NCBI RefSeq assembly: GCF_037042905.1
Contig: NC_087249.1
Location: forward strand, 3,410,001 to 3,474,000
Direction: 5' to 3'
DNA length: 64,000 nt
Origin: Lytechinus pictus
Lineage: Eukaryota
Part shown: positions 5,101-20,100 of the stretch, piece by piece
Layout: each line of letters begins with the position of its first letter
Numbering within the stretch: position 1 is the stretch's first letter
The notes under the pieces: generated by a model
Told to the model about the DNA's origin: nothing
Databases searched by the model: none
What the model saw: only the letters and a program-made list of their open reading frames with translations
Program-made: the position numbers and the translations under genes

Positions 5101-8100
5101 TTAACAGCCTCTGAATAAAATTGTTTCTGATAAAAATGCTACAAGATCATGATTATTTCTGGATTTTTTTTTATATTCATTGATCAATGCTAAAGAATTG
5201 AGTGAAACCAATCAATATTTTTGGGGGGATAGTAGACATTTTATTTCAAGTATTGAAATAAAAATCATCTATTTCGGCCCTTTCAGAAATCTTGTGAAAT
5301 CAACAATGATTTACAAATATTAAGACAAATCTTTACGTTCAAGGGTCTGTAAGTATTACTACCCTTTTTGTGCCTGCCCGGACTACGACGACAAACAAAC
5401 GAAAGCTCGCACGTGTTCTCATACTGGGTAAATAATAGTCAAAACAGCTTTATTGAATCTAGTCTCTTCATTATGGTCAAAGCTGACTCTTTGGCTTGCT
5501 GATTCACTTTGTTCCTTAGATTCCCGTAAAAACTATAAACAAACAAACAAATGAACAAAATCCAACATAAGTATATCATCATATCAAAGCATGTTACAGT
5601 GCAACTGCATTATAACGAGGCACTTGGGACGAGAGAAGATACATTGTTATAGGTAAAGTCTGCCACATCAGTGCCTTTAATAATAAGGTTCCACTGTATT
5701 ATGAGTCTAAACATTATACTAAGGTGAATAACAATTAACTTCAATTTAAAGTAATTGGACTTAAATTATCATAATAGCAATACTGTCCAGTATTTAATAC
5801 ACTAAGTGTTGTGAAAATTAGAAATAAACTCTAAACTGATATCCTACAAATAAGGAATATTTGTAAATGTATTTAACTGTATACAATGGGTGTCGAAAAC
5901 AGCTTAAATAGACAATGTAATTGCAAAAATGTTATGTGAGCAATAAATGTAATGTCAACCATCTTATATCAAGTTTTGGCGTATTTGAGTGCTTATTTCC
6001 TCAGGACTGAGGTTTGAGTTTAATCTAGTTGAGTTATCATTACACAATAAATTCGATACTGATTAAGAGTTTCTGTATATTTCCATACAAACAAATATTC
6101 ATAATTATAGTACTACACAAAGACCTGCACACTATGCGTACAATGCATCAATCTGATACACGAGCTATTGAAGTTCTACAGTAGGATAACACTGATTGCT
6201 GTATGCATACTGAGCGAGTTCTCTTGAAATTAAACCTAAAAGTTCTATTTATGCTTACCACTGTGCCACTTGTTACCAAAGTCTCAGGCAGGCATAAATA
6301 ATATGCCGATTAACGATGCAATTCCTTTTCCATCGCCATAACGTGCCCCAGTTTTGGGCCAAAAATTACAATCTTCGCAGACGATAAAATTATGGAATGC
6401 CAAATAGACAATTACAACCGCACGGTGTATGAAGTGCCTTTACACTCCCACCAAATTTGCCTTCACTGGTAACATAATCACATGCATGAGTACACTTACA
6501 TATATATGAAAATGCATTTACTAGTATTACATAAGTGGTGCATGTGAAATAATGTGACCATAATATGGAAATTTTTAAGCAAGCACTCCATACACCTCTT
6601 GCATGTAAATTGGTACACTTGCAATCTACAACACGAATAACATGGCAATTGAATAGCTTGATCAAACCAGAATGGCATAAGTGATGATGCGGAACTCAAA
6701 CAATGCACGTTTATAACATGTGCTGTAAAAGATTATAACACACACTGCAAAGGTTGTAAGGCAAGCTTAAAGGTTGCGACAATATTTAAGCGCTGTGTAT
6801 CTAAAATTCGCAGCAAACAAGATCAGAATTTGAGTCCTAAATTTTTAAACTGTACCAGAAAACGAAGCACATGTGCAAATGCAAGGTCAAACATTTGTAC
6901 CCGCTCCAAACAATCTCAAGTGTACATACATACCTGCTCTATGGAGGTACCTTTTCCAGAAGCAGTACGAGCTTCTGAACCGGCCTCCAGTATTCGGCAA
7001 GCTTCTTGTTTGGACGACCTTTGTTGTCAAGGTCTTTCGTTCCAACGCGCACCTGTACCCGCCTGACCAGACCATCTTCATCAGGAGTGGCTTCTGCGAC
7101 CATCGCAATTGGCCATTTCATACGCGGAGCTTCATCGTCAGTGAGCAATACAATGTCTCCCACTTGTAAATTCCGTCTGGGCATCGTCCATTTCTGTCGT
7201 CTTTGAAGTCCCAACAAGTACTCTTTCCGCCATCTTGACCAGAACTGTTCCAGTAAGAACTGAACCCTTCTCCAGGCTTTACGCGTGTACACATCCTCCT
7301 TCACAAATTGCCCAGGAGGGGGCAACGGAACCGTCCTCTTCAGAGTAAGGAGGTGGTTTGGCGTGAGAGGTGCATCCGCACTTGGGTCATTCATATTGGT
7401 CACTGTTAACGGTCGGCTATTGACGATTGCCATGGCTTCGTAAAACAAGGTACGAAGAGCGGAGTCTGTGAGTCTTCCTGGACACAGGTCTATGGTAGCC
7501 CTTAAGACACTTCTGACGGTTCGAATCTGTCTTTCCCACACGCCACCTGCGTGACTTGAGTGAGGGGCGTTGAAGACAAATTCACATTGCTGGTCTGCAA
7601 GGTACGTATTCACTTGGTCTGAAGTCATCTCTCTCAATGCAGATTGGAGCTCGTTTCTTGCTCCTACGAAGTTACTGCCTTGGTCGCACCTAATCTGTCT
7701 GACAGCTCCCCTAATTGCTATGAAACAGCGGAGAGCATTGATGAATGCGTCGGTAGTCATGTCGTCGAGCATCTCAATGTGGATACCTCTTGAACAGAGA
7801 CATGTGAATATAAGCCCATATCGCTTAATATCAGAACGACCTCTCCTTACAAAGAAAGGACCGAAACAATCCATACCCACATTCGTGAAAGGAGCCGAAG
7901 GTTCTACTCGATCTCTTGGCAAGTTTGCCATTTTCTGCTCTTCTTGAGGCCTACGAAGACGTCTGCATGACACACACTTTCGCAATACCTCTGCAACGAC
8001 TTTAGATCCGTTTACAATCCAGAATCCATTGGCTCTCAGGTGATTCTGCGTCATTCCTCGACCCTGATGTTTGATGTCCTCATGGAAGTGGCGGATAATC

Positions 8101-11100
8101 GCCCGAGTGATAGGGCTACGCTTGGGCAGGATAACAGGGTGAGCCACTTCTGTCGATAGTTCGCCAAGTCTGCCCTTCACTCGCGTGATCCCATCAAGGA
8201 TTATTGGGTCAAGGTCATGGATGGTACTTGTCGTTTTAACGGTCTTGTCCGACGTCAGAGCCTTGATTTCTTCAGGGTAAGCTTCCTGTTGAACTAACCG
8301 CAGAACGAACAGCTCTGCGTCCTTTCTCTCACGAACTAAGGAACCTTGTCTTGCTCCCTTCACTACCATCCGTAGACGAGCCAATACCTTGATCATCATC
8401 TTCCAACTAGAGATCCTGGTAAGGCGCGAGAGGAGGTTCAACGGTTCCGAATGAGTAGTTGTCGATAGGTTGGTTGCTCTCACTTCCGGATCCCCAACGG
8501 CGAGTGTCGGAGAGATACTTCCTACTGCAAAGTCTTTCTCCCAGAGGAAGCTTGGTCCTTGGAACCAATTTGTGCTACCCAGCTGACTTACGCTCAATCC
8601 TCTGGAAGCATGGTCAGCAGGGTTCTGATCAGTCGAGACATAATGCCATTGGTCGGGAGAAGTCCTATCTCTAATTAGCTGGACTCGATTAGCAACAAAC
8701 GTGTGGAACCTCCGCGCATCATTGTGGATGTATCCCAGGACTACTTGGGAATCTGTCCAGAAGAAATCTTCGGCATCATGATACTCTAGCTCTTCTTTCA
8801 ACATAGAGTGCACCTTAGCTGACACAACTGCCGCTGTCAACTCTAACCTGGGAATTGTAACCACCTTGGTTGGCGCAACCCTTGATTTGCCGAAGATCAG
8901 ACAACAGTGAACTTCTCCTTTCTGGTTAACAAGACGCAAATAAGAGCATTGGCCATAACCAGACTTGCTGGCATCCGAGAAATGGTGTAGCTGCACTGTT
9001 ACAGGATCACCAAACTCAGCAGGATGATAACACCGAGGTATTCTTAGCTCCTCTAGCTGCGGGATTTCCTTACACCATTGCTCCCACCTTGATTGCAGGT
9101 TCTCGGATACTGGATCATCCCACCCAAGCCCGCTACGACACATTTCTTGAAGGATTCTCTTGCCATCGAGAACGACCGGAGCCACAAATCCGAGAGGGTC
9201 ATAAAGGGATGCGACTATGGACAGAATTCCCCGCCGTGTCATTGGTTTCTCTTTCAGGGAAATTCTGAAACAAAAGGCATCCGTGGCCACATTCCAAACT
9301 ATCCCCAGAGCACGCTCTACTTGATCCTCAAAATCCAAGTTCGAGTCAGTGACATCACTGGCACGCTCAGACTTTGGCAGACTCTCCAGAACTGCCTTAG
9401 AATTCGAAACAAACTTGTGGAGACGTAAGCCACCCTTGCTGCAAAGTTGTCTGGCTTCATTGGCCAACTGAATGGCTTCCTCTTCACTGGATACACTCAC
9501 CAGCCCATCATCCACATAGAAGCTGCGCTCGACGAAACGAGATGCCAATGGAAATTCATTGCTGCAATGTCTAGCCAGATACTTTAAGCCATAATTGGCG
9601 CAACCTGGCGAAGAAGCGGCACCAAAAAGATGGACGTTCATGCGATAATCCACTGGCTCCTTGTTGATGTCGTTATCTTGGAACCACAGGAAGCGCAGGA
9701 GGTCTCGGTCATCCTCAGCGACCCTAAACTGAAAGAACATCTTCTCAACATCACATAGCACTGCTACATTGTGCTTCCTGAACCGACAAAGGACTCCCAC
9801 CAATGAGTTTATCATGTCCGGTCCCTTGAGCAGATGATCGTTAAGGCAGGTGCCGCCGTACTTCGCGGAACAATCAAACACTATTCTCATCTTCTTCTTC
9901 ATTGGATGGTACACACCATGATGTGGTATGTAATTTGTTTCTCCAGGCGGCGCCTTGGTCTCTACTTGTTCTGCAAAGCCACCATTAATGATATCTGTCA
10001 TGAAGCTTGTATAGTTGTCTCTATATGCTTCGTCCTTCTTAAGCTTTCGATGGAGGTGTTCGAATCGAACGGTTGCCAACCTTTTATTGCTTGGAAGGTT
10101 TGGCCGGGTCTTGAAGGGCAGCGGCATCTGCAAATGACCATCCTCGCATTGTACAATGTTGGTCTCAAGGTGTTTCAAGAATTGTAGGTCATTCTGAGAG
10201 CATGCTTTGTCCGGCGATTTGTCCTCTGCGAAATCTGCCTCAAGCAACCCTATGATCTCCTTTGGCTTCGGAAATGGTATCTCGCGAGTAGAAACCCTCC
10301 CACACTGGCTACTGAAGTCCATGGCATTCTCTTCTTCGGCAAAGCCAACAATACTCCAGCCGAGGTCAGTTCGAACAGCAAATGGTTCTACATCGCTACC
10401 AGTAACTACTTGTCTTGGTGTCAGAGCTCTTGGGCAATTATAGCCTATCAGTAGGCCGACTTCGCATCTCTGAAGTGCTGGCATTTCTCTTGCAACATCT
10501 TGGAGATGAGTCCACTTTTCAGCAGTACTTCTGCTTGGGATGTGTTCTCTATCAGTCGGTATGAAGTCACGCGTATAGCATTTTCCTATCTTGAGCTGGG
10601 AGGGCGACATCATACCTCTAACTAAGATACTTGAGGTCACGCTGCAATCAATGTTCGATGACGAAGTCATAGTAGATAACTTTAAGCGTATGGGTTGCTG
10701 CTTAGCATTCAGGGCTTGCGCTACTTCATCTAGAATGAACGATGAATCACTCTGGGTATCCAGGAGGGCGTAAGTCAGAATCTCTGACGATGGTGCTTGT
10801 TCTGCCGCGACCCACACTGGTACAATCATCGAAGTGCTAGCTTGTTTTCCAGAACGGACTTGGCAAGACGTAGCCCTGTCCTTAGAAGCTCCTTCACTCT
10901 TGTGCGCATTGTCCTCTCTTATCGTAGGGTTTTCCTCATGAAGAGCCGTGGGATGGCGCTTACCACATGTACTACACTTCAGCCTTTGTTTACATGCCTT
11001 AGAAAAATGCCCCTTCTGTAAGCAACCAAAGCATACATGATTTTCTTGAACAAACTTCCTGCGTTCAGAAAGTGGCTTGGCCAAAAACTTGTCACAGTCC

Positions 11101-14100
11101 TCGGACTTGTGTCCAGTTTCACTACACAGGCAGCAAGGTTTTGGAGCCTTCTTGACTTGGTTTGGGATGTTCTTGCCTTTGGCACTTTCCTTGGTGTTGA
11201 CAGCCAAAGCAGATCCTTTATTTCTTGCTTCTCGCTTGATCTTGAAGGTCTTGGGACTTGATTCTCTTTGAGAGTCCTCAGATTTCAGGGCACCTAGAGA
11301 AGAAATGGGATTGTTGGCTATCCTTGCCTCCTTAGCAACAAATTTCACAAACTTAGAAAATGAAGGATAGCTGCCGCCTTCCAACTCATTTGATACCACC
11401 CTATTCCAGCTACTAATCAGCCAGTCTGGAAGTTTGGCTATCATCTTTTGATTCTCATAGCAGTCGTTTAGCACCTGGAGGCCAGTGACATATGGCATAG
11501 CATCATCACAAGACTTTAAGTAGTCCGCAAACTTCTGAAGACCTATGGCATCTTTGGAGGCTATCTTCGGCCAAGCACTTAGCTTCTTCCGGAACGCTTG
11601 TTGGATATTAAAAGGATGACCATACCTCTGTCGAAGGCACCTCCATGCCCCATCATATGCCTCTTTGGAGTCCCCGAAAAAGAAACCTTCCACGGCCTCC
11701 CTTGCCGGACCAGTCAGGTACTGCTTCAGATAATACAGCATCTCTGTTGGTGGTATGCCACGGTTTTCGATCAAAGTCTTGAAACCTTTGTCGAACTCTA
11801 CAAACTCGAGCGGATCCCCACTAAAGGTGCGTGGCACTGGCATCGGAAGTCTTGTGTGGTACATGTTGTCTGCTAAAGCCTTACATAAGCCCTGGACGTC
11901 AACCGACGTTGTCTGAGGCGGCTGTAGTGGTGTCTTGTCACGAGGTTCCACATGCGAATCAGGTAGACTATCATGTAGCTGGCCTACTCTAAACTCTGGG
12001 CCCATCTCATCTTGAAAGGAAGGAGATGACGTCTTGGCAGGAAATTCTGCTGACTGCCCTTGAATACCTTCAGGTGGTTGGTTTACTCCAACTCCTGGGT
12101 ACATTTTGTCTTGAGGAAGAAGTGATGGTGTGTTACGAGATTCTACAGGCTGTCCAGGATTGCTATCAATGTCAATTACTGGTGTGGCTCCACGCAGTTG
12201 GCTGGTTTCAACCCCTTGGTCCATTTCGCTTAAAATTGAGCTGAAGACCGATGAAGCATATTCTTGTTTCAAGAATTCTTTCGCTATCTGCTTCCGATCC
12301 TCGGCGTCAAAAGGACCTTCTAGGGATCCCAGAACTTCTTCCAAGGCGTTGAGGCTATCTCTGACCATTGCGTTGGCACGGTCCATCCTTGTGGTGGCCT
12401 CTCTTATGGGGACCTTGTGTCTCCTCAAAATCTCGTAGGTTTCCATCAATTCCCTCTCTCCAGCTTCCAGTATGGATATCTGTTGTTTGATGGGACCTTC
12501 TTCTGTCTCTGTCTTAATGATTGTTCTAGCTGCCTTTACTGTGGCCTTAAGGGAGCCATACATCTTGAAAAACTTCCGCTCTGTCTTTGATTCTTCAGAG
12601 GCCTGAAGAGCGGCCATTTTTTCCGTGGGCTGCCTCTCCCTTGATGACTTTCTTGAATCTGCCATGTTTAATTGGCTTTGACACAACAGAAGTGTAATAA
12701 GGAGCTGGCCTCTTATGCTAAACCATGCACTTGCACCTTGTACAGCAAATTGACCAAATTAAATTGTCATGCAACTAGAGTGAAATCAAACATCAATTTA
12801 AGCAAAGCTACAGCGCTAAGCCTACCAACCTCATCAATGTAAAACCGCTTAAAATGCTTCTTGCTAATGCAATTACAAATACTCCATAGTAATTTGATTT
12901 TACATCTCCCAATAAAGCCTTTACGCACGCCTCAAAATTCGCTTATCAAAAGGGCTTGAATGCAGACCACGCGATCATGCGATAAAGTTCAACATCGCCA
13001 CATATTCCTTCCTTGCTTGACTCTGAACTGCGATGTCAATATCACTTTGTAATGAAATTACACCTTTAACTTTCTTGTCACTTGAGCACAAAACTAATGC
13101 TGGCTACCTGCAAACAAAACATGCAGTATTTGCAGAATCATATTGGAAACACTTTTCAATAGACTACTATACATGAAATAGTTATTAAAATTCAACTTTT
13201 ACTTGACCTCTGTTAATTTGTTATCAAGAGTCTTGAAGTTTCACAGAGCCTATTATAGCTCTGGTTCTAACTACTTTTATTTCATCAAGTTCAGATCCAA
13301 TGTTTCATTTATAAATTCAATGTTGTTGGCTTGATTTATGCTTCAAGTTCAAACCTGGCTGGACCTGGACTGTACAAGACTAAACCACGCTGGCTCCCGG
13401 GCTGTATGGCTTGACCGGGCCGATTCCCGGGCTGTTGTTCAAGCTGGACTTCAGCTGGATTAGGCTAGTTCATAAATTATGCTAGGGCTGCTACGAGAGG
13501 CTGACACAGAATAGTCTTGAACTTGGGCTTGGCTGATCCGCTAACATGGGCTTTAGTCCTGTTACATTATGGCTGCATGCCAACTGCTGGTGCAAATTAT
13601 GGTAAAGCCACGTATTTTATAACAGTGTATAATAACGATTGTGGCCGATTCCAGCTTAGCGTCCATAATACACCTCAATAATAAATCGATGACACTGCTG
13701 CATTGCAACCATAATTCATTGTAACTGTAACATTAGTGTAGATCAAACTGCATAGCGTCCATACACAGCTCTACATACCTCGAACTATTGAGACATATGA
13801 GAAATGACTGGATCACAACATCGTTTCACAATCCAAATCAAAATCCATCAACATCCACTCAGATTCTGAGATTCATGCGTTATGGTGCAATTCTAGCTGA
13901 TCTCTAGCATATATCCTGTGCTCGTCGCCAAACGTAGTTACATATGTATGTTCGTAGGTTCATCCAGCTGAAATGTCATGTTGAACTCAACTCAAATGTC
14001 TAGCGTCTATTTATTGGCTCCATCTTGATAATCAGGCTTGTTGATGATGATGAGGCCATTTTGACGCTACGTTGGAAGTGTTTTTACTGTGCCTGCCCGG

Positions 14101-17100
14101 ACTACGACGACAAACAAACGAAAGCTCGCACGTGTTCTCATACTGGGTAAATAATAGTCAAAACAGCTTTATTGAATCTAGTCTCTTCATTATGGTCAAA
14201 GCTGACTCTTTGGCTTGCTGATTCACTTTGTTCCTTAGATTCCCGTAAAAACTATAAACAAACAAACAAATGAACAAAATCCAACATAAGTATATCATCA
14301 TATCAAAGCATGTTACAGTGCAACTGCATTATAACGAGGCACTTGGGACGAGAGAAGATACATTGTTATAGGTAAAGTCTGCCACATCAGTGCCTTTAAT
14401 AATAAGGTTCCACTGTATTATGAGTCTAAACATTATACTAAGGTGAATAACAATTAACTTCAATTTAAAGTAATTGGACTTAAATTATCATAATAGCAAT
14501 ACTGTCCAGTATTTAATACACTAAGTGTTGTGAAAATTAGAAATAAACTCTAAACTGATATCCTACAAATAAGGAATATTTGTAAATGTATTTAACTGTA
14601 TACAATGGGTGTCGAAAACAGCTTAAATAGACAATGTAATTGCAAAAATGTTATGTGAGCAATAAATGTAATGTCAACCATCTTATATCAAGTTTTGGCG
14701 TATTTGAGTGCTTATTTCCTCAGGACTGAGGTTTGAGTTTAATCTAGTTGAGTTATCATTACACAATAAATTCGATACTGATTAAGAGTTTCTGTATATT
14801 TCCATACAAACAAATATTCATAATTATAGTACTACACAAAGACCTGCACACTATGCGTACAATGCATCAATCTGATACACGAGCTATTGAAGTTCTACAG
14901 TAGGATAACACTGATTGCTGTATGCATACTGAGCGAGTTCTCTTGAAATTAAACCTAAAAGTTCTATTTATGCTTACCACTGTGCCACTTGTTACCAAAG
15001 TCTCAGGCAGGCATAAATAATATGCCGATTAACGATGCAATTCCTTTTCCATCGCCATAACGTGCCCCAGTTTTGGGCCAAAAATTACAATCTTCGCAGA
15101 CGATAAAATTATGGAATGCCAAATAGACAATTACAACCGCACGGTGTATGAAGTGCCTTTACACTTTTGTCCCCAATTGATTAAACTTATTGACAGGGAT
15201 ATCTTCTAAAAAATGAATATATGATGTACAAGTCCTAATAATATGAAGAAAAAAAATGTACTTCCTTAAACATGTATCTGATTGATAGTATAAGCTCTTG
15301 AGAGAAAAATGTATTATGATCTCTTTAAAGGGATCGTTTAACTTTGTGAGCAGCTGATTAAAAAAATTCTCAAACTGAGTTGAAACGTGCATATGAGTGC
15401 CTGTATTTGTCCTCAAAAACCCTGAAACAGACCACAATATAGGATGAAAAACTCTAATTTAGATACAAGTAGCAATTTATTAGCCTGATTTTGAGAACCG
15501 TTTAGTAGACGGGTTCAGCTTATGACCAGTTTTCTCCAATTCAAAAAGTCCGTTGGCTATTTTGACTGCCTTCTGTTTTGTGTATCTCCTATACACACAC
15601 TATTAGCTGTACTGTACATTCAGTGTATACCTTGTACACACTGTATGTAGGTCATGATGTGTTCATCTAGAATTAATGTGTTGTGGTGCACAGATTCCCT
15701 GTCATTTAAACCAACTCCCAATTATTTCAAACTTTGGTTTACATCTCCAAGATTTTAAAATTGATCCTGTAAATATAATACTTTGAAACTTTGGGGATGG
15801 TATTTTTACACTATAAGCCTAATGTTTAGCCCATTTTCAGGAACCAAAAGGAGAATTTTTTAAATCAGAACAAAGTGAAATGATTACTTTAAGCTTTGAA
15901 AACTAAATGGTATTTTTATAATATTCTCTGGTTTACAATGGCTTTATTTTTAGTCGCCTTTTAAAAGTGATTATGTGCATGTGTTTTATTTTCAAATAAT
16001 TTTATTTGGAATCAAAGAATCACTTCTCAAAATGATATGCACTTCCAAATTTGTGCAAGAATTATAAATAGGAAAGGAACTTTGAAGACATGGCCCCTAT
16101 CTGGGCATTGTCTTACAAAGAGTTACGATTGATCCAATCAATCGCACTATGGACGGCCCGCAATGTCAACATCTATTATGCATGTTTGTTCAAAATATTT
16201 TCTAGCTATTATGTATATTGGTGCATTTATTGTTTTCTTGAAAATTCACTGCGCTTCTCTTTGCATACAAAGGACATTGTGCAAATTTTTCATAGAAAAA
16301 ATTATGACACTGATGGATTTCCATAGAGTTACAATTGATAGGATCAATGGTAACTCTTTGTAAGACGGGGCTATGATGTTAACTGGCTTCCCATTCAATC
16401 AAGGATCATGTATAATATTTTTGTATTTACATTGCCCCTACTTATCTTCAAGAACTTGTCCAATTCAATAAATCTTCTCTCTAAAATATTTGCCAAGACT
16501 TAATTGCATGAGAATAATGATTATAATAAACATTTTTTGTATAGCCCATTTTTCAATATGATACAATGTCTAGATGTACTTCCAAAGAAATTTGAATTTA
16601 TTACCTTCGATTGACTTGAGCCCTGTCTGTCTTTTACATGACACAAGCATTTTAATGTATTAATTCCTGCCAGGTACTGGTTTACCTTACATGGGTTGAG
16701 TGCAGCACAATGTGGATCAGTTTGAACCCATGTCCCTCTTTTTCAAAGTCCAGAGGCTAAGCCCTCAGGCTTTCTAGAAGGCTGTGCCAATACTATGGAA
16801 TGCTCTTCCTCAAACCTTAAGAAATATTTGATTGCTTCATAGAAGTGTAACACGCGGAAACTGATGTAGAAAGATGACACACGACACCATTCCTTGTGTT
16901 TCGGTTCGTTTAATATCGATGGATCGTTACATACAAAATTCAAAGTACAAGAACACAAGATAGAAAAAATAAAACCTGCAAAAACAAATAAGAACAAAAC
17001 AATTAAATAGAATTATGATATGTTCGAAAAATGCACAAATTAGAAATATACACATATTTGCTTGTGACTCCAAGATAAAACATTCATCAATATGACGTCA

Positions 17101-20100
17101 AGTAGACTCGTAATAATCAATGATAAACATGTTGTCTATATCCATTCATTAAAACCTAATCAATATTGCCTGAATTCAACTCATCTAATCACTAATTCGG
17201 TTCCTCCATCGTTATGGATAACTCTTCCAACAAATAAATGAAATACATCCATCAAGTGAAATTTACCAAACAACAATTAGAATATGCCAACAAATTAACA
17301 TTGAAATACAGTGGTTAATAAATGATAACCACTCACCCTGGCAATCTGGCCTAGAGGACCATATTTCCTCTGGTGAGAGCCTCACCCGCTACACGAATGT
17401 CATGTCAAATACCTTTAAAAGGAAAGTAACAATAATTACACATAGTCAGCAATCATTGTGACCCTTTACTCTGAAAACACTAAACTGAAACATTGAATTA
17501 ACAATTCAATAACCAAAATCAATTTAACCAAAATCTTTCACTCTAAAGATCATTTTACTAAATTGTTTCACTATAAGATTAGAACCGAACACATTCTGTT
17601 TTATAACTACATACTACAATCAAGTATACAAGTACAAGTAATTAATACAAAATATAACAAAATTACATAAAAATCATCTGAAGTAACAAACACAGATAAC
17701 TAATAAACTACTTAATTCACAAAACCCCTTTAACTTAAGACAGATAACATGCTATGCTAGCAAAGATAGCACTTTAATATAACCTAACCTCTTGTTCAAA
17801 ACAATAGAAAATACATTGTGAACTAACTTTATAAACTATTATTAAAAACTAACAGAATTGACAAAATAAGATAATTATCTTACCTATAATTCTGACCCGA
17901 AAATGAAGAAGCCTCTCTGCCTGCCCCATGAATGGGGTGCAGTGCAGGAGTGAATTGGAGCAAAATCCTCTCTCCTTTTTATGCAGTTATCACTCTCCAT
18001 TCACAGATGCTAAGCCTTGACCATAATTATCTACATCATACAAGCTCATAGCTCTGGAATGTGATATTTTGACCCAAAGACCATTCAGCATCACTCTTAC
18101 CCAGAAAGAGTGTGAATCATACTTCTTCAAAAGCATGAAGATTGTTAAATATTTCTACTTTCTACTACTTCCTGTGCACTTCCTGTGAAGGCATCTATCA
18201 CTTACAGATAAATGATTAAGAGTTATGAAAATATATGAATTTCCATTAAACAGTTCATTTTGACCTGTTACAGAAGAACTAACAGTGTACTTATTTCTAA
18301 TGGCCATTGAAGTTATATCTAAAAAATATAAACTGTACATGTACCTATCATGTTCATAATGTTTATTTTATTTTCACTCAAACTTTTACTGTTTTTCCCC
18401 ATGATTCCTCATGCTTAAAAACATTGTGATGTTATGTGTTTACTTAGAACTGCACCATAATTGATGTTAATTATTATCTTTGAAGGGTCCTTCATCAACA
18501 AGGCGGTGACATCATATGTAGAGAGGGGTGTGAAGAGGGGACATACTCGATGGAAGGAGAATGTTTCTCATGTCATTCTTCCTGTGAGACGTGTAATGGA
18601 GGTGGAATCATGGATTGCACTCGCTGTAAACAACTTGGTATGCTCTTCCTATATTCAAACTATTTCAGGGACCACCAGGCCTTGACCATATTTTCAATGA
18701 CCCTACAATGTTCTTGCATACTGAATCTGTCCATAGAGACCACAGATCTCAATTTCTCTTATGAAGTATGTTAGTTATTCCTGTATCTGTCTATAAACAC
18801 CACCTCTCTGTAGGGATCCCATTTTTGTCTCTCCTGCATAGCAGAGCGAGACTAGGCGCCACTTTTCCGACGGCGGCGTCGTCAACATTGAAAAATGTCA
18901 TCATAACTTAGAAAGTATATGGACCTAGTTCATGAAACTTGGACATAAGGGTAATGAAGTATTATTGAACATCCTGCCTGAGTTTCAGGTCACATGACCA
19001 AGGTCAAAGGTCATTTAGGGTCAATGAACTTAGACCATGTTGGGGGAATCAATATCGAAATCTTAATCAAGGTTAAGTTTTCGAAATGTTGTCATAACTT
19101 CAAAAGTATATGGACCTAGTTCATAAAACTTAGATAAAAGGTTAGTCAAGTTTTACTGAATATCCTGCCTGAGTTTCACCTCCATGATTAAGGTCAAAGG
19201 TCACTTAGGGTCAACAAACTTTGGCCATGTTGGGGTTTTTTGAGGAATTGTCATAACTTTAAAAGTTTATGGATCTAATTCATGAAACTTGGACATAAGA
19301 GCAACCATGTATTCCTGAATATCATGCGCGAGTTTCAGGTCACATGACCAAGGTCAAAGGTCATTTAGGGTCAGCAAACTTTGGTAATGTTGGGGGTATT
19401 TGTCGAATCGTCATCATAACTTTAAAAGTTCATGAAACTTGGACATAAGAGCAGCAATGTATCCCTGAATACCCTGTGTGTGTTTCAGGAACATGGCCAA
19501 GATCAAAGGTCATTTAAAGGTCAATGAACTCTGGACGTGTTGGGAGTATGTGTTGAATTGGCATCATAACTTCGGAAGTTTATGGTACTTGCTCATGAAA
19601 CATCGACATAAGGGGTAATCAAGTATGAATGATTGTTTTGCACATGTCTTAGGTCACATGATCATATGGTCAAAGGTTGTTTTGGGTCAATGGACATATT
19701 AGTGTTTTCTTCTGTGAATAATTATTCATTAGCGTTTTTTCAAAGGAAGCACTGATACTATATCGAATTGCGTAATGCAGGCGAGACCGCCAGAGGCGTT
19801 CCACTTGTTGAACTTTAGAATAGCTTTATATTTCCAGAATATGTCCACACAGACGACTTGTATAGATATTGTGACCTTTTTTCCTGTTTCTGATCAATAT
19901 TTCAATATGCTCCTAACTCATCCATAAACCTGTATATAAAGACCACATTTCTCTTGTGTAAAGTATATTTTGTTATGCAGTTAACTTGAAACATAATATA
20001 TTTTGTCCAAATAATATTTTGATGTGTACTGATCGTTATTAAAGGTCAAGTCCACCCCAGAAAAATGTTGATTTGAATAAATAGAGAAAAATCAAACTAG

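Follow-up and report, generated by a model that had tools for sequence, protein, structure and literature searches.

An intron in the long terminal repeat of a BEL/Pao retrotransposon from Lytechinus pictus and a probable self-primer at its splice junction

The 64,000 nucleotides (nt) of Lytechinus pictus DNA analyzed here (contig NC_087249.1, positions 3,410,001 to 3,474,000, in the following called the window and numbered from its first letter) contain a complete long terminal repeat (LTR) retrotransposon of the BEL/Pao superfamily, which occupies 5369-15163 on the minus strand and carries an intron inside its LTR. This intron is removed from some RNAs, and the data support that such RNAs can be reverse-transcribed into new copies. 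At the splice junction two short segments are joined to a sequence that is exactly complementary to the first bases behind the LTR, the place of the primer-binding site. The best explanation, which we consider probable, is self-priming as in Tf1 with a primer split by an intron, in a BEL/Pao clade distributed over the deuterostomes.

An earlier note on this DNA had proposed self-priming from the letters alone, and all its letters and coordinates were correct on the minus strand, on which all features of the element are given here. The 5' LTR (14088-15163; 1076 bp, TGT...ACA) terminates with ...GGCACA at 14088 and is followed from 14087 downwards by GTAAAAACACTTCC with no TGG, so that the primer-binding site GTAAAAACACT (14077-14087) lies flush with the LTR end. 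The LTR intron (14252-14977; 726 nt, GTAAGC...TTTATAG, 31% G+C) is bordered by the donor CAGTG/GTAAGC with its GT at 14977-14976 and the acceptor TTTGTTTGTTTGTTTATAG/TTTTTACGGG with its AG at 14253-14252 (slashes mark boundaries), and an AATAAA is located downstream of the acceptor at 14173-14168. These sites have the features of spliceosomal GT-AG introns, namely a G/GTAAGC donor and a pyrimidine fraction of 0.75 at the acceptor, which ranks third of 60 AG sites. Joining 14978 to 14251 yields AGTG/TTTTTAC, the exact complement of 14087-14077 over 11 nt. The last 4 nt of exon 1 (AGTG, 14978-14981) pair with nt 8-11 of the primer site and the first 7 nt of exon 2 (TTTTTAC, 14245-14251, with GGG next) with nt 1-7, while the unspliced RNA pairs over 8 nt. 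The observations which the note had named as able to overturn its self-priming reading (a matching host tRNA, missing complementarity in related elements, an unused junction) were followed up at least in part, and as set out below all results favor the idea, which is hence supported.

Evidence for splicing of the LTR intron

The L. pictus assembly contains five full copies of the element (contigs C3, C5 twice, C7 and C11) and a solo LTR on C8, and each family copy inspected was found beside its own target duplication. In a genome DNA search with the LTR, the copy on C11 matched LTR positions 1-186 and 912-1076 only, and this holds true for both of its LTRs. The alignment showed a full element with its own target site duplication (TSD) CACAA and an identity of 99.86% over 7994 bases. 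Both LTRs comprise 350 bp, have the same sequence throughout and contain CACAGTG/TTTTTACGGG at the joint. What they lack, 726 nt in all, coincides exactly with the predicted GT..AG segment 14977-14252, with a one-base ambiguity (G). An inserted repeat was considered as the origin of the segment and rejected: genome-wide, it occurs only in the LTRs of this element, and since it is absent elsewhere, it is not a repeat that landed in the LTR. A retro-copied element devoid of such a segment is the classic sign of removal from RNA by splicing. Altogether, the predicted LTR intron is real.

The same junction was found in sequencing runs, the reads and contigs of which were compared with the window between 13300 and 15300. 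A contig of run X11 combines 14223-14251 (29 nt) with 14978-15007 (30 nt), and its 59 nt are the length expected of a junction-specific unitig at k = 31. Its depth was 95, compared to 38 for the intron contigs and 60 for the leader. Furthermore, four 31-mers were sampled from a 60-nt stretch centered on the junction, all of them spanning it. The complete set was present in 19 runs from about eight studies under three organism labels, two of the four in one oligo-dT RNA-seq run (echinoderm metagenome), and junction 31-mers in at least 20 runs overall. For X11 and most of these runs, an RNA origin is only a guess. Since some of the runs were guessed to be DNA, intron-less DNA copies probably exist in other animals, too. 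The predicted junction of 14978 with 14251 is hence found in the DNA of the C11 sister element, in the X11 contig and in the 31-mers, and the exact removal visible in all three concerns the LTR intron in general rather than its 5' copy in particular. Reads and contigs of organism B all differ from the window at 14152, 14191, 14404 and 14587; the change at 14152 is common to organism B and the intron-less C11 copy and could serve to phase spliced reads.

At the other end of the RNA, the single-cell RNA run X23 showed sense reads, four of which carry poly(A) tails after 14141, 27 nt past the AATAAA. Because of these tails, the R/U5 border is placed at 14141/14140, which leaves a U5 of 53 nt (14088-14140). 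The 3' reads of X23 cross the acceptor unspliced up to about 14440 with a depth of 25-29 compared to 50 in exon 2, which indicates that LTR RNA with a retained intron is common. The earlier note had raised the difficulty that the intron must survive in the 3' LTR copy in order to be inherited. In principle this is answered by the 3'-end reads, which run unspliced into the intron, and the intron-less C11 copy would be the outcome when the 3' LTR is spliced as well. Low-level antisense reads over 14037-14840 (U5/R and mid-intron) were observed in both single-cell RNA runs.

Primer site and splice junction in related families

Relatives of the pol protein were found in the protein database and their contigs were then examined. 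The LTR ends are defined by an LTR pair and a TSD in the elements of Apostichopus japonicus (L072, ATGCA), Patiria miniata (L073, TGATG), Glandiceps talaboti (L074, GATGT) and the fish Acanthochromis polyacanthus (L075, CAGAT) as well as in an element from an NCBI assembly (L087, GTCAC). In two further cases, the metagenome contig L071 and a family known from circularly permuted run-assembly (Logan) contigs (L076-L085), the conserved ACA/GT motif was used to place the LTR end. Three more metagenome contigs with relatives at 66-71% (L069, L070 and L086) were uninformative, as the boundary between LTR and primer site lies outside them or is not recognizable.

In the LTR of each family, a pyrimidine-rich tract and AG are followed by 7 nt exactly complementary to internal nt 1-7 and then by GG (GT in L087), and the arrangement is situated 74-157 nt before the LTR end. 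The sequence itself differs from family to family, and so do the first internal bases. The window element (tatag/TTTTTAC) and L071 (tacag/TTTTTAC) start with GTAAAAA, Apostichopus (ctcag/TTTTGAC) with GTCAAAA, Patiria (gtcag/ATCTCAC) with GTGAGAT, Glandiceps (accag/ATCTTAC) with GTAAGAT and the fish elements (gtag/CTCTTAC and ccag/CTCTTAC) with GTAAGAG. In seven intron-bearing elements, a distance of exactly 7 nt separates the acceptor from the conserved GG; the intron position is conserved in this sense, with removal predicted outside L. pictus. Donors were selected by ranking the upstream GT sites according to how far the preceding bases lengthen the complement. The best ones are GGCACAGTG/GTAAGC in the window element (pairing of 11 nt), GGAAGCATAGCG/GTTAGT in L071 (11), GGAAGACATAAG/GTATGA in Apostichopus (12), GGCCCACGAG/GTAAAT in Patiria (10), GGCCCACGAG/GTAGTA in Glandiceps (10) and GG(A/G)GAACAAG followed by GTTTGTA in the fish elements (11). 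They share a recognizable motif, GGnnnCAynnG/GT. In six of the seven related families the predicted upstream donor adds 3-5 nt, resulting in a total pairing of 10-12 nt flush with the LTR end, and the LTR introns of the members comprise 163-726 nt. The Logan family possesses a 295-nt intron-less LTR with a contiguous AAAG plus CTCTTAC that matches GTAAGAGCTTT over 11 nt and is therefore a second case of the intron-less state beside C11. The 6636-nt contigs of this 61%-related family are circularly permuted and overlap by 30 nt at their ends; they correspond to the internal region plus one 295-nt LTR. Shorter versions of 6370 nt stop just after TGTAAGTAACTCTGCAGATCTTCTGGTAAA, where the graph branch may mark a second LTR variant. 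An alignment of the U3 regions among the relatives with MAFFT was of no help, as these are too diverged.

The complementarity between primer site and LTR junction, which the earlier note had described for one element, extends to eight families (nine elements) together with compensatory covariation: nt 1-10 of the primer site form Watson-Crick pairs with the spliced junction throughout, with no mismatch, and the pairing stops at 10-12 nt. Compensatory changes of the pair type occur at primer-site nt 3, 5, 7, 9, 10 and 11. Across the junction, AGTG pairs with CACT in the window element, AGCG with CGCT in L071, CAAG with CTTG in the fish elements and AAAG with CTTT in the Logan family. Pairing a junction with the site of a foreign family gave 2-8 nt, and 10 nt among the three close CTCTTAC families.

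Regarding the expectation by chance, a 4-nt extension from some GT among the 58 available would occur with a probability of about 0.2, taken alone. Since the donor was fixed independently by the intron-less genomic copy and the junction contig, the applicable value is 1/256. When primer sites were shuffled and any GT and AG could be chosen freely, at least 11 nt were obtained in 0.7% of the trials for the window element, and for six relatives the real pairing value was reached in 0-4.7% of the trials.

Among the families, the first paired base is preceded by TATA-like boxes at a distance of 22-38 nt and coincides with a pyrimidine-purine step in five of eight cases. In the window element, the candidate TATA box is TATTTAT (15013-15019), 32-38 nt upstream of the first complementary base. 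These motifs are suggestive of a transcript start near the first paired bases.

Alternative explanations

The alternative that survives best, though unlikely in our estimation, is a Tf1-like self-priming independent of splicing. The transcript would start at or near the acceptor-like CAG or TAG and pair with its first 8-9 nt (GUUUUUAC in the window element), and the intron in U3 would be spliced only as an intron of the 3' untranslated region, or only intron-less copies would replicate efficiently. Indeed, even without splicing all elements pair over 8-9 nt directly at the LTR end, a match that would seldom arise by chance. TCAGTT and TCAGATC in two of the relatives resemble initiator motifs, intron-less LTRs with a contiguous primer exist, and the 3' reads are largely unspliced. 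However, primer-site nt 9-11 pair with the end of exon 1 and not with the end of the intron: nt 9 (A here, G in L071) mismatches the intron A and matches the T and C of exon 1. Since the intron ends with (C/T)AG and the A at nt 9 of the window element pairs with an exon-1 T, the unspliced reading cannot explain nt 9-11. Furthermore, the extension by exon 1 is found at homologous donor motifs in separate lineages, for which the joint chance is about 1e-5. Pyrimidine tracts of 20 nt are features of acceptors rather than of promoters, and it would be surprising if seven families all had an acceptor precisely where their transcripts begin.

The complementarity could also represent a structural RNA element involved in leader folding, packaging or dimerization, while the true primer would be a host RNA. 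For the folding of the spliced leader, a construct of exon 1 (15 nt), exon 2, U5 and 25 nt was used. The predicted minimum-energy fold contained the helix of primer and primer site in six of six elements, and in each it closed the whole R-U5 domain, as a structural element might do. With 15 nt of intron replacing exon 1, the helix was lost in the window element and L071 and comprised two pairs beyond the 7-nt core in the others. The primer was not observed directly, which would also agree with a purely structural role. This explanation is nevertheless improbable, as the first base behind the LTR is also the first to be paired in each of the seven elements whose LTR ends were verified by a TSD, precisely where the 3' end of a primer would define the position. 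Moreover, no tRNA-like site is present within 30 nt, and the primer site differs among families and follows the LTR of its own element, which a conserved host RNA would not allow.

Still less probable, to a degree that we rate as very low, is priming at GTAAAAACACTTCC by a tRNA of the host, either whole or, in the manner of copia, as a half. Such priming would agree with the tRNA-Arg or tRNA-Gly given for BEL/Pao by the International Committee on Taxonomy of Viruses (ICTV; PMC8742986), and the scan of the host tRNA set was not exhaustive. In the window element, neither a TGG at the LTR end nor a tRNA-like site within 30 nt was found, and in the seven related families no TGG follows the LTR. 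A TGG located 29 nt downstream was considered and rejected, being unlike a tRNA end. The 14-nt complement of the primer site occurs 11 times in 812 Mb, compared to 11 times in the reversed control, and five of the 11 occurrences are copies of the element. ARAGORN predicted no tRNA at the loci of this complement and none in the window, and no Rfam match was obtained in the LTR or the leader. The putative primer, ending with ...GUGUUUUUAC, contains a run of five U. Such a run is an RNA polymerase III terminator, and a nuclear tRNA gene is therefore unlikely to encode the primer. In addition, the site varies by single bases among hosts with conserved tRNAs, and each of these differences has its counterpart in the LTR of the respective element, for which a conserved host RNA offers no explanation. 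The statement of the earlier note that the element has no tRNA primer site, tested here in part, thus held: outside the element copies the complement remains at chance level. A host tRNA primer is effectively excluded. So is a match that arose by chance and has no function, although the stretch is short and rich in A and T and one of the 58 GT sites would offer a 4-nt extension about 20% of the time: the same architecture is built from different sequences in eight families, the shuffle controls gave p of 0.05 or less for each element, and the donor was fixed independently.

Proposed mechanism

According to the favored explanation, self-priming with an intron-split primer, transcription would start shortly upstream of the donor at 14977, and the LTR intron would then be removed, a splice which is itself supported by the evidence above. 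As suggested by folding and covariation, the junction AGUG/UUUUUAC would pair over 11 nt with 14087-14077 directly after the LTR. By analogy to Tf1, the element RNase H might cut the RNA after ...UAC and before the conserved GG, and a conserved ...AC/GG context is indeed present at the presumed cut site. The 3' end of the primer would result after 14245, a position that is conserved in all relatives, and would be extended through U5 and exon 2 (157 nt here). The predicted strong-stop product would be DNA that begins at 14088 and is attached to RNA with the terminal sequence ...AGUGUUUUUAC. This DNA would be transferred to the 3' LTR (5369-6444; 1076 bp, 100% identical to the 5' LTR) through the 104-nt stretch 14244-14141, which serves as working R and reaches from the presumed cleavage site to the poly(A) site.

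The 3' LTR carries the same splice features (donor GT 6258-6257, intron 6258-5533, 7-nt start of exon 2 at 5532-5526), and U3, exon 1 and the intron would be copied from it. The 5' intron would accordingly be expendable, while the 3' intron would have to be retained. The inheritance problem would thereby be removed, as everything upstream of the cut, including the intron, would be copied from the 3' LTR. If the 3' copy were spliced as well, progeny with short, intron-less LTRs as on C11 would arise. Plus-strand strong-stop synthesis may copy the primer and rewrite the primer site in each cycle, from which the absence of mismatches would follow. The different use of the two intron copies could be explained by a preference for the cap-proximal donor at the 5' end, and a spliced intron in the 3' untranslated region may be disfavored since it invites nonsense-mediated decay. 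In an alternative form of the mechanism, a separate spliced LTR transcript would prime in trans.

Beyond self-priming as such, splicing may be an obligatory gate for reverse transcription in this old BEL/Pao clade, which extends from echinoderms and hemichordates to teleost fish: the 5' intron would have to be removed for priming and the 3' intron kept for inheritance, and the first exon may comprise only a few nucleotides. We incline towards this stronger reading by a narrow balance. Several points weigh against the favored explanation. The transcription start is unmapped, and a start downstream of the donor would bar the 5' LTR from supplying the junction. Neither the primer nor the strong-stop cDNA was observed. 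The contribution of exon 1 is limited to 3-5 nt, a pairing of 8-9 nt is available even to the unspliced RNA, and a primer can exist without an intron, as seen in the intron-less members. Should the RNA begin with the paired bases, as it does in Tf1, exon 1 would comprise only 3-5 nt, and we know of no precedent for such a short spliced first exon. The junction RNA in X11 and most of the other junction runs, given their guessed RNA origin, could derive from transcribed intron-less DNA copies. The single-cell RNA reads of X23 and X24 gave no listed joint, but the rows 14250-14280 had been dropped as repeat. Among the relatives, the donors are predicted, some of them are weak (GTAGTA, GTTTGT), the fish elements contain two to three equally good candidates, and the LTR ends of L071 and L076 are derived from the ACA/GT motif and not from a second LTR.

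Comparison with known systems

Self-priming is reportedly used by Tf1 and Tf2 of Schizosaccharomyces pombe (Levin laboratory) with about 11 nt of their own 5' RNA, released by an RNase H cut. The element analyzed here resembles Tf1 in that a tRNA primer is missing, about 11 nt of its own RNA pair flush with the end of the 5' LTR, in the window element only after splicing, the helix closes R-U5, and a cut after the paired stretch would free a 3' end. Unlike Tf1, a Ty3/gypsy element of fungi, the clade described here belongs to BEL/Pao and to animals, and its descent is not that of chromoviruses. Furthermore, the primer in most members is split into 3-5 nt and 7 nt by an LTR intron. While the paired stretch of Tf1 represents the first bases of the transcript, the position of the primer at the extreme 5' end of the RNA is only presumed in this clade. 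Hairpin or self-priming in chromoviruses has been mentioned as well (PMC3601003). With self-priming known from these systems, what would be new is its occurrence in another superfamily and a primer assembled by splicing.

Belpaoviridae are described by the ICTV as primed by host tRNA-Arg or tRNA-Gly at an 18-nt site (PMC8742986). The clade shares with canonical BEL/Pao elements the gag-pol order, Peptidase_A17, LTRs of 0.2-1.2 kb, the polypurine tract and target duplications of 5 bp, whereas the 18-nt tRNA primer site is missing. This site, complementary to the 3' end of the host tRNA, is a descriptive and not a phylogenetic feature; BEL/Pao membership by protein homology stands despite its absence. 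Primer sites were not discussed in a large survey of BEL/Pao elements (PMC3118150) and not treated in the Sinbad paper. In the full-text literature searched, nothing relevant was found on self-priming in BEL/Pao, on introns within LTRs or on primers linked to or made by splicing.

Similarities to other systems are partial. In copia-type elements, priming occurs by an internal fragment of tRNA-Met. The primer site described here likewise lacks an initial TGG; copia uses a piece of a host tRNA, whereas the present element carries the complementary sequence in its LTR, where it changes in step with the site. Human T-cell leukemia virus type 1 and bovine leukemia virus have their major splice donor in R, and as in these viruses the donor lies in a repeated region, so that the 5' and 3' copies must be used differently. 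The viral donor is joined to an internal acceptor to form subgenomic mRNAs, whereas in the present case the LTR contains donor and acceptor alike, and their joining is proposed to yield a replication primer. The C11 copy resembles processed retrocopies, as it derives from LTR-spliced RNA, but here the retrocopy is the element itself and gag-pol is uninterrupted.

Further features of the element and its surroundings

The element comprises 9795 bp, as defined by the LTR pair, the target duplication and the Pfam domains. Its LTR limits follow from the 100% identical repeat 5369-6446 / 14088-15165, the TGT..ACA ends and the 5-bp target duplication AAAAG at 15168-15164 and 5368-5364. The polypurine tract GGTGGGAG (6445-6452) adjoins the 3' LTR; its context TTTGGTGGGAG/TGTAA is conserved across the clade, and TTTG(G/A)TGGGAG followed by TGTAA is common to all relatives. 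The TG..CA LTR ends, the polypurine tract and the short target duplication are those of BEL/Pao elements. The gag-pol open reading frame (ORF; 6939-12665) encodes 1908 amino acids (aa) from the first ATG without interruption and carries DUF1759 (gag), RVT_1, Peptidase_A17 (1.3e-50), Integrase_H2C2 and DUF5641 according to Pfam. Since a single ORF holds these domains, the element is assigned to BEL/Pao. In the protein database search, the polyprotein was 100% identical to an L. pictus RefSeq protein, while the contig index yielded no record of the window's own protein.

The leader between primer site and gag ATG (12666-14076) comprises 1.4 kb, compared to 60-200 nt in the relatives from sea cucumber, fish and the Logan family, and contains no ORF of more than 60 aa. 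In the contigs of organism B it carries a 7-nt insertion after 13546. The sister copy on C7 (C7:6471787-6484604, TSD ACAAT) has a 3' LTR interrupted by an insertion of about 3 kb, which is bordered by an 8-bp duplication of LTR positions 739-746. The solo LTR on C8 (C8:16007767-16008842, TSD CATGG) is of the same family and intron-bearing. In the L. pictus genome, at least 99 BEL/Pao matches to reverse transcriptase and protease were counted, many of them in open frames of 1800-1950 aa; they group at 70% (including the C346 element), about 55%, about 49% and about 38% identity to the window element. Elsewhere in the window, a tandem array with a unit of 81 bp (305-1171; about eight or more copies, 70-96% identity) and three diverged direct repeats of about 149 nt each with a spacing of 159-191 nt (18901-19399) were observed.

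A Strongylocentrotus purpuratus RefSeq protein is 99% identical to the L. pictus polyprotein (1172/1188 aa). Runs under three organism codes hold 92-94% of the 31-mers of LTR and leader (13600-15165), and the junction 31-mers occur under the organism codes B, C and E, the last of which is a fourth label. An identity this high between sea urchin lineages whose split dates back tens of millions of years suggests a recent horizontal transfer of the element; a mixing or mislabelling of samples would explain it, too.

Significance for LTR retroelements

Priming of reverse transcription is a defining step of LTR retroelements. If the proposed mechanism is true, reverse transcription in a large and active BEL/Pao clade of wide distribution starts from the element's own RNA, contrary to the accepted statement of host tRNA priming (PMC8742986). 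Annotation pipelines that seek tRNA-complementary sites will miss or mis-score such elements, which can be recognized by a sequence signature, a pyrimidine tract with AG/7 nt/GG in the LTR that is complementary to ACA/GTnnnnn. The LTR length polymorphism of 1076 versus 350 bp indicates that such differences can arise through splicing rather than deletion. Furthermore, the primer would exist only as an exon-exon junction, which would tie nuclear RNA processing to the start of replication, and one transcript would have to be spliced at one copy of the repeat and remain unspliced at the other. The old question of how one and the same splice signal, present at both ends of an RNA, can be recognized at only one of them thereby becomes testable.

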